From Monocercomonoides exilis PA203 (taxonomy: Eukaryota > Protista > Preaxostyla), in NCBI GenBank assembly GCA_001643675.2, contig LSRY02000028.1, forward strand, positions 558,001 through 622,000: 64,000 nucleotides of DNA. Direction: 5' to 3'. The notes beneath the pieces are model-generated. The model was not told where the DNA came from. It saw only the letters and a program-made list of their open reading frames with translations, and searched no databases. Of this stretch, positions 5,015-12,416 are shown piece after piece. How positions within the stretch are numbered: position 1 is the stretch's first letter; every line of letters begins with the position of its first letter. The position numbers and the translations under genes are program-made.

Positions 5015-7650
5015 ATGGCCGACAGTCAAATGTATAACTTATGTTTTGGATGCAAGAAAAAAGTGGCTAAAATTTATTGCTCCACGTGCCATGCTTCTTT
5101 GTGCGAGCATTGTTTTTTATCCCTTCACATTTTAAATCCATCTCATATTGCTGCTATTCTGACAAGATGGACTCCACCAACGGAAAGATGTGAAGACAGA
5201 AATGAATCTCATTTTTTTATTCAATGCTCTGATTGCCAAATGGTTTGTTAGCTTTTGATTTTCAAAATTGATAAAAATTTTAATCAAGCCTGTTTGCATG
5301 TGTTGCCCATCTGTTTTTGAGCATTTTGGGCACAAATGTGCTGTACTATATTTAGAAAGTGTTTCAAGTGGATTTCTTCCAATTTCTTATCCATCACCAA
5401 GAGACACTATCCAATCACTCCCTATCAATAAACAATTACAAACAAAGAAGAATTCGCGAGTTGCGCGATATTTTCGTGATTCAACCGTCAATGCAATTGA
5501 TGACCTTCTTATGATTAAACGAAACGTATGTTATTATTTTGCACCTTATTTACTATGATTGTTTATGAATTTCTTAACTTTTTTTGATTCAGTTACCATC
5601 AGTTTTTTCCAAACGTTCACACGCAATACGCTCTCTTTTTCGAGACGTACATGCGATTATTAGTGAAATAGAAGAAGATATCATCGAACAAGAGGAACAA
5701 CTTCAAGATGACATTTTTTCGAAAACGAAGCAATTAATTGGAATATTATCTTCAGATCTTAATCAAGGTTTTTTCAGGCAATATCTTCCTTACTCGTTTG
5801 CATACGATGAATTGCTTACTCTACAATCCGAAGATGCAAACTCTAATTTGCCGATTGCAATGATTGGCAAAAATTTCACTCAAAGTGATCTTTCAGAAGT
5901 CTTTTCCAAATACCCTTCAATGAACAACCTTTCAAAGAATCTTTCCCAAGCCCATTCGCTTATCCAGCATCCAATCGAGCAGCTCATCAATGTTCACAGT
6001 GTCTCGTCTGTGCTGACAGCTTCTATTCTTCTCACATTTGACAAGTGGGAAAGGGGGATACAAAACCACCCTCTGTTTGACGAAGCCAAGGGAGACCCAC
6101 GCAATCCTCTGAAGTCTCTTGGCTTTGACCCCCACTTCCATCAGCGAAGATTGAAGCGAAGGGCAAAGAGGAAGGCTGGAGTGGATGACAGCGTCTCCAG
6201 CGACAAAGAGAAAGAGAAAGAGAAAGAGCCACGGAACAGTCGGCTGCCAGATGCGAATGAGAAGTCTGCGAAGAACAGCAGAAATAACTCAACGACCGAC
6301 GGCAAACGGCCGAGCCGCATAAAAGAGCAGACAGAGCAGCTGAGGGCAGAGCAGGACGGAGAGAGCTGCTCAGACTCGTCAGCCTCTTCCTCCTTCTCCT
6401 CCTCTTCTGAAGAGGAAGAAGGCTACGAGAATGCAACGCTGACTGCTCTCGAAGCATATTTCACTCAGCTCTCCACTTTCACTCCGCCTGCGCTCATCCA
6501 GCACAATAAACACAACTCTGCTTCTTCTTCTTCCTCATCTTCTTCTGCTTCTGCAGCGTCCTTTGAAGACGATTCCGAAAGCAGCTTCTCCGAATTGGAT
6601 CTGGCAGAGCTGTGGAACAAAGTGAGTTCTGGTTGCTTCGCAGGAAGCTTGGCGCTTCAGGAGGAAGCAGCCAAAGCAAACTATTTAAAACAGACGCAGC
6701 AAAATGCAACTTTGGTGAATAAGACATCGGAAAAGGAAGAAAAACTGCAAGTCCCAACAAGCAGGTCGGAGTCAGCAAAAGATCAATCTGCACATTCTTC
6801 GCTGAAAGAAGCAGCTGCAGCTACAACTGCAACTGCAAAATTATCACCTTCAATCACAATTTCATCAGCAGCCAATACTCCTCTCAACGACAACAGCACC
6901 AGGGCCACACAAGGAAACAGCGATAAACTTGGTTTTCTGAAGCTTTCACCCGAACAAGATGTGGCTTCGCTTCTCGCGGCAGAAGGCGAAGCCGGCGAGG
7001 CAGCGCTGACGAGCCTGGAGGAGATCAACAAGCAGAGCGCGGGGGCGCTTGCCGATCTGAACAACTCGCTCTTTCATTTTCAGACGATCGATCCGACGCT
7101 GGCTGCTTCGCTGATCACCCTCGCGTCGAATCTGCAGACCTCGGCAGCGGGCCAAGCGATTGGCGAGATCAAAACAGAGAATGGTCTCTTGGACATCAAC
7201 AGCGTACTGCCAGACGCGGTGAATCTTCAGTCAGCCTCTTTGATTCAAAGCAGCATTGGAAATGGCGCTGTGAGCAATAACAACACCAGCAATGCTAACA
7301 ACGCATCAGTCTCACCTTCTCAACTTCTCTTCGAACCAAGCAAAACTGGCCTGATTCAAAAGGAGCTGCTTTCAGCATCATCTTCATTTGTGGCATCTCA
7401 AACAGCATCCACACAACCACCCAATTCACAGACAAATGATCGTCTTTCTTCTCAAACTGTCTTTTCCTCTCAACAACAACAGCAACAACAACAACAACAG
7501 AGCGGATCAACAGCAACTTCTCCGTCTGCACAGTCTTTTTCGAGTCAGCCCATTCTGTCTGCTGCCATCTCCACACAGACAAAGTACATCCCTCAACAAC
7601 AACAGCAACAGCAACAAACAGGACAGTCTGCAACATCATCGTTTTCTTCT

Positions 7651-7683
<33 letters not shown>

Positions 7684-8823
7684 GCAGCACTTCTACCAAC
7701 TTCACAGGCCATCCCAGCAACTTCTTCTTCCTCTCCATCGACAATGGCCATGCCTCTGACACATTACTCTTCACTCGGCTCTTCTTCCTCGCCTTCTCTG
7801 AAGACAAAGCTCAACTCCTCCTTTATGACATATGTGCCGTCTTCTTCGGCGTCCTCTTCCTCTTCTTCTTCATCATCTTCATCATCATCATCTTCTTCTT
7901 CTTCTTCAACTTCTCAATCCTCATCATCTTCATCATCCTCAACAGTATACACTCCATTCAGTTACTCTTCTTATTCCTCTCCTTCCTCCTCTCCTTCTTC
8001 TCCTTCTTCATCTTCTCTTGCCACAACATACACTCCTTCTGCCCAATCTCCCTCTCTTTCTTCTTCTTCCAATTCTTCCAATTCTTCCTCTTCCTCTTCA
8101 AATACAAACTCCAATTCTCCATCGCCTTCCACATCTTCATCAGCCACACCGAAGACACGAGACAGCAACTCATCGGCATCTGACTCGAATGAAAGCGGAG
8201 AGTCTAATTCTCGCACATACAGGCCAAGCACCACCCACTACAGGACACAGGGCAACCAGCAGGCATCGAACGATGGAGACAGCCGGAAGAGCTTCATCTC
8301 CACGTGGAAGGAGAAAGACGAGAAAGACACGCAAGAGAAAGAGAAGGATTCGAAGGAAAAAGAAGAGAAAGACGCAGAAGTTGAGCGCCGTGCCAAGCGG
8401 GCAGCGTCTGAGAACTCGTCAGTCTTCTTTGCCACGTCGCTGATCGCGTCGAAGTACTCGCGGGAGAATCCCCCGCCCAGCGGAATGAAGTTCGAAGGGT
8501 ATATTTTGGGCGGCCTCTCGCTGGAGCACCGAAGAGGGTGGATCGCCAGCCGGGCGTTCCCAAACAACGTCTTCTTCGACCTGAGCGTGGTGAAGCCCTC
8601 GCAGCAGTGCTTTGTGTATGTCGGCGCACACGCCATTTTCACTGTTGGGCTGAATGTTCCTGGGCCGTCGGAATTCAGAGTGGCAACTGTTGATTTATCA
8701 GCTCCGACAGAAGATACAAACATCACTGAGCAGACAAAGGGAATTTGCGTGTTTTACACTAGAAATGGTTGGTGCAAAAGAGGGGATCAATGCACTTATG
8801 CTCATCTGAGGAAAAAAGATTAA
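5015..8823 (+). CDS. B-box zinc finger / coiled-coil protein with long Ser/Gln low-complexity region and C-terminal CCCH zinc finger
   Basis: CFGC..YCSTCHASLCEHCFLSLH..H (B-box), then a second Cys/His cluster split by a short intron. The 1079-aa exon ends in CVFYTRNGWCKRGDQCTYAH (C-x8-C-x5-C-x3-H). Confidence 0.8.
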
Positions 8824-9084: not shown

Positions 9085-10575
9085 ATGGCTACTCCATCAG
9101 ATTCTGGAACTTATGAATATGATTTAATTGTGATTGGAGGAGGCAGTGGAGGTGTTGCTTGCGCCAAGGCTGCTGGAGACGCAGGAGCAAAAGTTCTTTG
9201 TTTTGATTATGTGACTCCCTCTCCACGTGGCACATCTTGGGGATTGGGAGGAACATGTGTAAATGTTGGCTGCATTCCCAAGAAGCTGATGCACAGAGCT
9301 GCAGCAATCGGTGGAGATATTGCAGATGCACCTTCTTTTGGATGGGAAGGTGTTGACCGTAAAGCAGCAAAAATTAACTGGTCAGAGCTTGTGCAACGTG
9401 TACAAAATCATGTTCGCAAATTGAGTTTTGGATATAGAGGAGAACTGAGGTCCAAAGGTGTAACATATATTCCAGCCATTGCATCATTCAAAGATCCTCA
9501 CACTATTGCTTACAAACAAAGAGGTGAAGATAAAACAGTTACGGGGAAATACATTGTCATTGCATGCGGTGGACGTCCAACATATCCTGATGTTCCTGGA
9601 GCAAAAGAATACTGTATTACGTCTGATGATCTGTTTTCATTATCCACAGAACCAGGGAAAGTTTTATGTGTTGGAGCTTCATACGTTTCATTGGAATGCG
9701 CAGGATTTCTTACTGAACTCGGATTCGATACAACTGTGATGGTACGATCGATTTTGTTGAGAGGATTCGATCAGGAGATAGCAGAGAAAGTTGGAGCATA
9801 TATGGAAGAGCACGGAACAAAATTCCAGAAAGAGCAGACACCAGTTGCATTTGCTAAAAAAGAAGATGGAAAAATTATTGTAAAATCAACAGGAAAACTT
9901 GGAGACAAAGAGGAAGAATTTGACACAGTGCTTCTTGCAACTGGAAGAACGCCTGTTACTGAAGCACTGAATCTTGAAGCTGCTGGAGTGAAAATGGACG
10001 CACGAACAAAGAAAATACCAGTTGATAAAACTGCAGCAACAAATGTTCCGTTCATTTATTGCATTGGTGACGCTCAGCTGGGAGCACCAGAACTGACACC
10101 AACTGCTATTCTGAGTGGAAAGATACTTGCGAAGCGTTTGTTCGGAGGAAGCCTGGAGGAGATGGTATACACAGATGTGCCAACAGCTGTGTTTACACCA
10201 CTCGAATATGGATCAATTGGCTTACCCGAAGAGAAAGCGAAGGATGTTGTGGGCGAAAGTAACGTGGTTGTCTATCACGGCTCGTTCACTCCGCTTGAGT
10301 GGGCAATCAGCGACGAGCGGAGCCATGAGGGAGAAGGATATGTGAAGGTTGTATGCGACAAGACCCGCGAAGAGACTGTCATGGGACTGCACTATTTGGG
10401 TCCAAATGCAGCTGAGGTGATCAACGGCTGGGCTCCATCGCTTCGACTTGGCGTGAGGAAGAGAGATTTGGAGCGTGTGGTGGGGATTCATCCGTGTTGT
10501 GCTGAAGAAATAAACAATGTCTCTGTGATAAAGGGATCTGGTGTCTCAGAGGCAAAAGGTGGCTGCTGAGGATAA
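9085..10575 (+). CDS. TXNRD: High-Mr (animal-type) thioredoxin reductase, selenoprotein with C-terminal Gly-Cys-Sec-Gly
   Basis: FAD motif GGGSGG, redox centre GGTCVNVGCIPKK, GASYVSLECAG, HP..AEE. End reads GGC TGC TGA GGA TAA (TGA 10567-10569, TAA 10573-10575). Confidence 0.95.
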
Positions 10576-10576
10576 A

Positions 10577-10765
10577 GGCGCGAGGTTAACACTTCTGAAG
10601 AGGAGAGAGGAGAAGAGTAAGAGAGAGTGTGTGTAGAGTTAGATGGACAAAGAAAAACAGAGAAATTTTTGAATTCAGCGGGAAAAAACATTTTCGTTGA
10701 TTTGCAGATTTGTTTGTTTTTCTTTGTTCTGGTGGTTGGAGAGATTGGCAGAAGTACCTCGCGCC
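10577..10765 (+). promoter_or_regulatory. Long irregular 3' UTR hairpin immediately after the TrxR stop
   Basis: GGCGCGAGGT(10577-86) plus ACTTCTG(10591-97) pair with CAGAAGT-ACCTCGCGCC(10749-65). Inner stems ACAAAGAAAAACAGA/TTTGTTTTTCTTTGT and TCAGCGGGA/TTTCGTTGA. Confidence 0.65.
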
Positions 10766-10919
10766 CGATGACCCGTTTACAAATTAATGCTGCTGTGATC
10801 TTTTTTTTCTTATCTTAAATGAATTCTTTTTAAATTTTTATTGTGTTTTTCTTGTTCTGATATTGTTGATTATCATTCAATTGTTCTATCTTTTGGCCTG
10901 TTGTCTTTCTGATTGAATA

Positions 10920-11113
10920 TTTGCGCATTACATTTCAGCATTTCTGACGAGGATGGCCTAAACACAATTTTTGGTGCGGCCAATGCAGCGTGAAGACTCA
11001 ACAAAAGCCACATGCTGTTCCTCTGATTCTCTTCCTCTGCGTGCCACTGCCCTGCTCCTCAGCCACGTGCAAGTCAACTCACAGCAGCAGTGGCGACAGG
11101 CGTGTTGCGCAGA
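10920..11113 (+). promoter_or_regulatory. Candidate SECIS element, type II-like, non-canonical
   Basis: CTGAC(10944-48), GAGGATGGCC, T, AAA, mini-stem CAC/GTG, GGCCA, [inserted hairpin], TCCTC, TGAT(11024-27). UGA-to-AA spacing is 12 nt. Confidence 0.7.
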
Positions 11114-11634
11114 CAGAGTGCGTTGCATTGTATAACTTGAATTGTTGTGTGCAATTGATAAAAGAACGGAATCGTGAAAAGAGAAGAAATGTGCTTGTCA
11201 CATTTTTTTTATTCTTTTTTCCGTAGTTTTTTTATCATTCTGGAGGAATTGAGCATTTGCATGCTTTTCTTCATATCCAGAATTGCATTCAGCATTCATT
11301 CATGCTTTCGCAGCAGAGACGTTGCGTAATTGTTTTATCAGAGTTGTTGCTCGACTTTATTTCCTATAATATTTTATAATTTTTCAAAATTTTTTCTTTA
11401 TGACAAAAAACGTCTTCAACTTGCGAAATTGAATTGGAATTTTATTTTTTTTTTTTTAATTTTGTTTTATGGAGTAAATTATAAATGGCTGCAAAACCAA
11501 AAAGTTATTCCTAAAATCGAAAAAATTAATTTCGACATAAATGATCATTCGATAATCAATAAAAAAAGATAGTCAAAACGAAATGACAATGAAATGTAAA
11601 TTTGAATATTTCATTATAAGTTCAGATCAGATCA

Positions 11635-12416
11635 ATGAGCAAACAAATTGCCAAAGATTCTCAAGAAGCCGTTCTTATCAAAAGCCACAACTGGAAAAAA
11701 TTGATTGAATTATGTATCGATAAACAAGTTGATGTTTGCTTGTATTTTTTGAGATTTATTTTGATGGTCAATTTATGCTTTTGAAAATTTCATTTTCATT
11801 GAATCAACAAACTTTCAATTTTTCTATAAAATATTTTGAATATAAAATACAACAGGGAGAAAATATTGAATATTGGTTGATAATACAATATTTCTGTCAC
11901 CTCATTCAAGGCGAAGGAGATGAAGCGCGTGTTCTTTCTTCCAGAGCTGATTACGCGTGTCCAAAATCCCCGTATCTGGAACAATTGAAGATGATCACTT
12001 TAGCATTTAATAATAGAGATTTCTCAACATATTTCTCATTGTTTGGAAATTTACCAAAAAATGACTCGTTTGCAGAGCTGGCCATTATCGCCCAACAGTC
12101 CGTAAGAGAAAGGAACGCATCACTTCTTGAAATGAATTGTTCAACTATTTCTCTTGCCGTCACTTCAGAATATTGCGGTCTACCTTCGGAGGAAGTTTAT
12201 AAATGTTTGACTTTTTTTCAAAAACAATATTTATCATATTTTTTCCTTTTATCATTAGACGTTAAAGCAAGAGGATGGACTTATGATTATTCTACTAAAT
12301 TTTTTACTATTCCGCGTGAAATCCAGACACAAGCACGTCTTCAATCCACAAAATCTACTATTGATGAGTCAGCCTTTATGTCAGCGTTGACTTCCATTCT
12401 AGCTTCAAGCAAATAA
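11635..12416 (+). CDS. PCI-domain protein, probably COP9 signalosome subunit 8 (CSN8/eIF3k/Rpn12 family), 3 exons
   Basis: Spliced product ..YFCHLIQGEGDEARVL..VRERNASLLEMNCSTISLAVTSEYCGLPSEEV..ARGWTYD matches the CSN8-type winged-helix pattern. Confidence 0.65.

Follow-up and report, generated by a model that had tools for sequence, protein, structure and literature searches.

A putative Y-shaped SECIS element in the 3'UTR of a thioredoxin reductase gene of Monocercomonoides exilis

Almost all annotation of selenoproteins depends on the detection of SECIS elements, for which the standard tools presuppose an unbranched hairpin. Eukaryotic type II SECIS elements (Rfam family SECIS_1, RF00031; the SECISearch/SECISearch3 consensus) lie in the 3'UTR of a UGA-containing gene and combine a kink-turn core with a helix II of about 10 bp, an unpaired AA(R) or CC 10-13 nt from the quartet and a mini-stem in the apical loop. 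The published consensus of the core is UGAN/KGAW (PMC3753652), and a loose published pattern permits NTGA (PMC2375036). SECISearch-type pipelines allow a distance of 15-39 nt from the apical AA to the 3' GA and reject candidates that are Y-shaped; in SECISearch3, an excess one-sided insertion in helix 2 is a further ground for rejection (PMC2375036, PMC1802603, PMC3753652). Lineage-specific variants include GUGA in Ostreococcus and UGUA-AUGA in Dictyostelium (PMC2375036, PMC3753652), and the forms found in Toxoplasma have also been named lineage-specific (PMC3753652). Such variants provide a precedent for small or isolated selenoproteomes drifting near the core. They change bases and not topology, and none is described there as branched. 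In an incomplete search of the literature, no SECIS of branched, three-way or Y-shaped form and none with CUGA was found, in agreement with the earlier note on this DNA, whose author had not recognised such an architecture as described.

In M. exilis, the enzymes of Sec-tRNA synthesis and the Sec elongation factor have been reported (PMC6759080, PMC10703272). Selenoproteins and SECIS elements are not described in the main text of the genome papers (PMC6759080, PMC10703272). In the window (the whole stretch of DNA that was analysed, 64,000 nt), the ORF and its translation define an intronless gene of a large thioredoxin reductase (TrxR) at 9085-10575 on the plus strand. The ORF 9085-10569 encodes a pyridine-nucleotide disulfide oxidoreductase of 494 residues, which shares 98% identity with an NCBI protein of M. 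exilis named thioredoxin-disulfide reductase and 50-58% with the large TrxRs of many eukaryotes. Its reading frame ends with GGC TGC TGA GGA TAA, the Sec codon TGA being at 10567-10569. If UGA is read as Sec, the C-terminus becomes Gly-Gly-Cys-Sec-Gly. The Gly-Cys-Sec-Gly end is typical of Sec-type large TrxRs. Judged by its sequence, the gene belongs to the Sec-type thioredoxin reductases, so that a SECIS element would be needed. An exact-protein look-up found no transcript contigs for this TrxR on record.

The next gene downstream has an apparent start ATG at 11635 (MSKQIAKDSQEAVLIK...) and an intron from near 11743. Because of this ATG, the 3'UTR of TrxR should end before about 11550, which sets an upper bound of less than about 1 kb on its length. 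The upstream neighbour (5584-8823 of the window) is an intronless ORF of 1079 residues consisting mostly of poly-Ser and poly-Gln runs, with a CCCH zinc-finger-like motif at its C-terminal end. Within the UTR and outside the SECIS candidate, a long hairpin of about 190 nt is found at 10577-10765 on the plus strand, its first base lying 7 nt after the Sec UGA. The fold of 10567-10775 has an energy of -65 kcal/mol, with GGCGCGAGGU/ACCUCGCGCC as the closing strands. A GC-rich hairpin of about 58 nt (1545-1602) also starts 7 nt after UGA in L010, a Sec-type orthologue with 58% identity. The post-UGA hairpin of both genes may be an element of the Sec-redefinition type that is conserved in position and not in sequence.

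The SECIS candidate itself occupies 10944-11027 of the plus strand, about 375 nt downstream of the Sec UGA. It is thus on the sense strand and 3' of a gene whose in-frame UGA occupies a known Sec position. The earlier note had described all SECIS landmarks as being in register here, and every coordinate and string that it gave proved exact. The 5' core (10944-10948, +) supplies the C, UGA, C strand of the kink-turn quartet (CTGAC), and the 3' core (11024-11027, +) is UGAU, which fits KGAW; UGAC at 10945-48 together with UGAU at 11024-27 agrees in sequence with the UGAN/KGAW kink-turn core. The 5' strand of helix II is continuous (10949-10958, +; GAGGATGGCC, in RNA GAGGAUGGCC, composed of GAGGA and UGGCC). 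It leads to the apical loop at 10959-10977 (+), which comprises U 10959, AAA at 10960-62, a type II mini-stem of CAC (10963-65) with GTG (10974-76) and a U-rich loop. The AAA begins 12 nt after UGA, within the 10-13 nt usual for the apical AA, and is unpaired in the folds of this gene copy (C23). All ten positions of helix II form Watson-Crick pairs. Its 3' strand is split five and five by a one-sided insert of 36 nt: GGCCA of the upper half lies at 10978-10982 (+) and UCCUC of the lower half at 11019-11023 (+). The insert (10983-11018, +) consists of an AU linker, an 8-bp stem and an 18-nt A-rich loop. Its stem strands are GCAGCGTG (10985-92) and CATGCTGT (11011-18), two G-U pairs included, and this lateral hairpin folds alone at -9.3 kcal/mol.

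The element shares with type II SECIS its place in the 3'UTR of a UGA-containing gene, the core, the helix II of about 10 bp, the unpaired AAA at its usual distance and the apical mini-stem. It differs in three respects. The 36-nt hairpin breaks the 3' strand of helix II and gives a three-way junction instead of a continuous, unbranched helix; the distance from AA to the 3' GA is 62 nt as against the 15-39 nt allowed by the pipelines; and the base preceding UGA is C and not the usual A (sometimes G). This C at 10944, pointed out previously, is present in both gene copies. The design of the published finders, with their limit on the AA-to-GA distance and their filter against Y shapes, supports the expectation that standard searches would miss the element. 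An Rfam cmscan of the TrxR UTR at E<=10 reported no SECIS family, and a search of the whole 82-Mb assembly with RF00031 gave no match. Since cmscan also missed the canonical-looking SECIS of two other genes (L007 and L008, below), the Rfam result carries no weight. A single-sequence covariance model (R1) with a hand-given structure missed the L008 and L010 control elements and returned spurious local matches only.

Folding was carried out with ViennaRNA, and the partition function was calculated on a UTR context of 775 nt (10576-11350). The three-way junction that the earlier note had drawn from a hairpin inserted in helix II was predicted in all contexts, being the minimum-free-energy fold of 10935-11035, 10920-11113 and 10890-11140. 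In the 775-nt context helix II had mean pair probabilities of 0.95 (lower half) and 0.96 (upper half), and the insert hairpin had one of 0.98. The topology predicted from the sequence is thus a Y shape. Deleting 10983-11018 in silico gave a textbook unbranched type II SECIS, with an energy of -20 kcal/mol for the upper stem-loop (ViennaRNA). In the junction the 5' strand runs through with a linker of 0 nt, 2 nt (AU) separate the AAA arm from the side hairpin, and the side hairpin joins the lower helix directly (0 nt). Linkers of 0/2/0 nt would be equally compatible with stacking of the side hairpin, instead of the AAA arm, on the lower helix.

The outer parts of the structure proposed earlier fared less well. 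A helix I had been suggested between 10920-33 and 11102-13. Two alternative pairings for helix I appeared in some local folds (10920-27/11106-13 and 10923-27/11038-42), and in the full-UTR fold the pair probability of the proposed helix and of both alternatives was about 0. For the second hairpin, at 11043-11094 in the remainder of the conserved UTR block (11028-11332, +), the strand sequences and coordinates were correct (GCCACTGC at 11043-50 and GCAGTGGC at 11087-94), while the structure formed only in short-context folds and had a pair probability of about 0-0.03 in the full-UTR context. Neither the outer helix I of that proposal nor the second hairpin is supported.

Taken together, the stretch 10944-11027 is probably a functional SECIS of a Y-shaped variant in the TrxR mRNA. 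In this model it would direct UGA 10567-69 to be read as Sec. The kink-turn core would be built of tandem sheared G-A pairs, with UGA facing UGA, and would be followed by the 10-bp helix II and by a type II apical loop whose unpaired AAA lies at a distance of 12 nt from the core. Both halves of the helix would stack along the unbroken 5' strand, and this stacking would keep the core-to-AAA geometry needed by the SECIS-binding protein and the Sec elongation factor. The extra hairpin would point sideways and either be tolerated or play an accessory role. The stacking, the protein binding and the recoding activity of the element are inferred.

The genome contains a second copy of TrxR on contig C49, whose protein is 98% identical to that of the copy in the window (C23). 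There are 57 nt differences between the coding regions; of the codon changes, 47 are synonymous and 9 nonsynonymous, a proportion that places both copies under purifying selection. Divergence at synonymous sites, which are approximately neutral, is about 13%, and TGC TGA GGA TAA is identical in the two copies. When the UTRs are compared in bins of 50 nt, 10634-10732 shows 76-82% identity; in an indel region (10783-10932) the identity collapses, then rises to 92-100% at 10933-11332 and falls to 56-72% at 11383-11475. The spacer sequences flanking the conserved block show 0-82% identity. In the comparison of the two copies, the SECIS candidate thus appears to open a constrained UTR block of 400 nt. 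The rest of this block (11033-11332 of the window) comprises 300 nt at 92-100% identity, and the hairpins predicted there depend on context. Before the block, at 10783-10932 of the window, the alignment with C49 shows a 68-nt indel and unalignable AT-rich sequence; due to the indel, the distance from UGA to the SECIS candidate differs between the copies. A whole-genome DNA search with the element matched only the two TrxR copies, so it does not belong to a wider repeat.

Four substitutions separate the C23 and C49 elements. One changes the N of UGAN from C to U in the C49 core and is neutral, and two fall in the loop of the side hairpin. The fourth, G10979A, replaces a C-G pair in the upper half of helix II by a C-A mismatch in C49. 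No compensatory changes were found between the two elements. The pair probabilities of C49 are 0.04 for the upper half of helix II and 0.40 for the lower half, while the side hairpin stays at 0.98-0.99 in both copies, and in the minimum-free-energy fold of C49 the AAA is paired. Mismatches in helix II also occur in three control SECIS (C-C, U-U and a 2x2 loop); therefore, G10979A weakens the Y-shaped model without refuting it.

The C49 fold bears on another explanation, in which the core, the lower helix and the AAA arm do constitute the SECIS, the working RNA being unbranched because a tiny UTR intron is removed or the RNA is refolded upon protein binding. The intron would run from GT at 10974 to AG at 11007 (34 nt). 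The dinucleotides GT (10974-75) and AG (11006-07) are present and conserved in C49, and the upper helix is not thermodynamically favoured in that copy. However, removal of 10974-11007 would delete the GGCCA strand and leave a long 3' bulge, and the energy of the upper stem-loop would then be -8.3 kcal/mol instead of the native -22.5. The 36-nt insert whose loss restores a perfect SECIS lacks GT-AG ends. Furthermore, 34 nt with 53% G+C is far from the average intron of M. exilis, 124 nt with 25% G+C (PMC6759080), and the two introns inspected, those of L007 and L008, are long and AT-rich. An unbranched working form of this kind is therefore considered very unlikely.

The search for other selenoprotein genes with the Pfam Rdx model revealed two SelW-like genes, L007 (G000:C40) and L008 (G000:C18). 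In both, an intron interrupts the CxxU motif, and exon 2 begins with the TGA codon (CTV|U in L007, CAS|U in L008). In L007 the exon junction is at 1365/1498 and the SECIS at 1786-1828; in L008 the TGA is at about 1471-1473 and the SECIS at 1745-1788. Both SECIS are unbranched, with 9/10 helix positions paired: AUGA-12 nt-AAA-...-UGAU in L007 and AUGA-12 nt-AAA-...-CGAA in L008. They have the apical sequence AAAGCGUAAG in common, which is absent from the TrxR element. The 12-nt spacing from UGA to AAA, the AAA, the helix II of 10 positions and the location at least 60-90 nt downstream of the stop codon are shared with the TrxR element. The two SelW-like elements differ from it in being unbranched, in measuring about 43 nt from core to core and in starting with AUGA. 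The lineage's machinery thus reads ordinary SECIS; as those of L007 and L008 are ordinary, the TrxR element is exceptional in the genome, the odd one out.

The selenoproteome found here consists of TrxR in two copies and the two SelW-like genes. The earlier note had expected the unusual fold to imply more hidden selenoproteins in this lineage. This is not supported: the two other genes carry unbranched AUGA SECIS, and the branched element was found only in the TrxR copies. Genes of GPx and of Sep15/SelM had no match in the genome, and a SelK match (E=0.1) was rejected as low-complexity. SelD (L004, G000:C2:1005166-1005555, minus strand) has Cys and not Sec at its active site (GLGCACK). A Lys/Glu-rich protein of 614 residues is encoded in two copies, L023 (862-2706) and L024 (G000:C16). 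It has a weak L7Ae domain at residues 214-297 (Pfam E 5e-6) and no sequence match among solved structures. From its sequence, this protein is a candidate SECIS-binding protein, possibly SBP2-like.

In the collections searched, no close orthologue of TrxR was found, the next best proteins being 58% identical. The nearest Sec-type orthologue is L010 (Logan contig SRR33890328_40482, 58% protein identity), which ends with Gly-Cys-Sec-Gly. Its SECIS resembles the TrxR element in the 12-nt spacing, the AAA and the type II mini-stem, and differs in being unbranched, in its GUGA core and in an internal loop in helix II. The branched fold that the earlier note proposed to look for in other selenoprotein UTRs and in orthologous TrxR UTRs is therefore absent from L007, L008 and L010 alike. 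As the L010 SECIS is unbranched, the side hairpin is specific to the Monocercomonoides lineage, and it is older than the C23/C49 duplication.

The TrxR of Blattamonas nauphoetae (L009 4470-4485, JARBJD010000303.1), the closest one from a named oxymonad, ends with Cys-Cys-Gly, as does that of L011 (a Logan contig, 57% identical; 1655-1668), so that a SECIS is not needed there. The sequences point to a Sec-to-Cys exchange in TrxR within or near the oxymonads. A lineage that can abandon Sec invites the explanation that the UGA of M. exilis is a plain stop, or that Sec insertion is inefficient or a relict, the element being a decaying remnant and no functional SECIS being required. The helix-weakening substitution in the C49 copy would fit such decay. 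Against it, TGC-TGA-GGA-TAA is unchanged in the two copies despite their synonymous divergence, and the genome still has the Sec machinery and other selenoprotein genes. Moreover, a large TrxR truncated before its Sec-Gly end loses the C-terminal redox centre. This explanation is regarded as highly improbable.

The energy of the fold relative to shuffled sequences is unremarkable (z of -0.66 and -1.13), and for this reason a SECIS-specific pattern was scored instead. It required UGA, AA 10-13 nt later, a helix with 10/10 Watson-Crick pairs followed by NGA, and a 3' strand split by an insert of 10-60 nt with at least 4 bp on each side. In 2000 dinucleotide shuffles the pattern matched 0.0085 times per shuffled UTR, or 0.003 times when the insert had to reach -7 kcal/mol or better; the pattern was set after the element had been seen, and these figures are optimistic by a few-fold. 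Both strands of the window (128 kb) contained six other split-helix matches, about 0.05 per UTR length, and a comparably stable insert was present in one of the six.

Other SECIS in the TrxR UTR were sought with two scanners. The pattern scanner recovered two of the control SECIS (L007, L008) with 9/10 pairs; the third, of L010, it detected only at a threshold of 7/10. In 10576-11550 it found no canonical candidates with at least 8/10 pairs, the chance expectation being about 1.2. In the energy-based scan, closure was forced beside each UGA...GA pair, and an unpaired AA 9-14 nt from UGA was required; only the element at 10944-11027 produced a SECIS-like shape in the same interval. No other candidate in the UTR has every SECIS landmark in register. 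Several other cores were considered and rejected. AUGA at 10768 lacks a helix II. GUGA at 10990, the sole real competitor, has a weak helix with an 85-nt multiloop and is destroyed in C49 by A10993G. UUGA at 10670 and 11156 pair locally and not across, and AUGA at 11590 lies beside or within the next gene.

These counts have to be set against the explanation that the resemblance to a SECIS is due to chance, the real SECIS being another non-canonical structure of the UTR beyond the reach of the scanners and the block 10933-11332 serving another UTR function. The pattern is post hoc and has its six counterparts elsewhere in the 128 kb. The conserved block greatly exceeds a SECIS in size, the C before UGA and the mismatch in C49 depart from the consensus, and neither Rfam nor the ad hoc Infernal model is usable as an independent judge. 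On the other side, only 0.01-0.05 chance matches are expected in the TrxR UTR, with one in six of the others having an insert of comparable stability; in 10576-11550 none of the other UGA...AA...GA arrangements takes on a SECIS-like fold; and the 12-nt spacing is exactly that of the lineage's bona fide SECIS. Chance resemblance is accordingly regarded as unlikely.

The reading of 10944-11027 as a Y-shaped SECIS is an in-silico case based on sequence analysis of one gene family in one species. It carries with it the broader proposition that the oxymonad machinery accepts both a C before UGA and a helix II with a hairpin interrupting its 3' strand, which would make this a naturally functional three-way-junction SECIS; to this we would give even chances. 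If it holds, the rules of the SECIS finders that reject Y-shaped candidates and limit the AA-to-GA distance to <=39 nt would give false negatives, and lineages possessing the Sec machinery in which no SECIS or selenoproteins have been found would merit a branch-tolerant re-scan. A functional element would be a new structural variant of a known one, a matter for selenoprotein specialists and tool builders. The continuity of the helix II 3' strand would then be dispensable, and the element would offer a natural test case for the way in which the core-to-AAR geometry is measured by SBP2, eEFSec and the ribosome. It would also explain why the TrxR gene, and perhaps genes of other protists, has been annotated as ending at UGA, and it would document a selenoproteome in a eukaryote without mitochondria.
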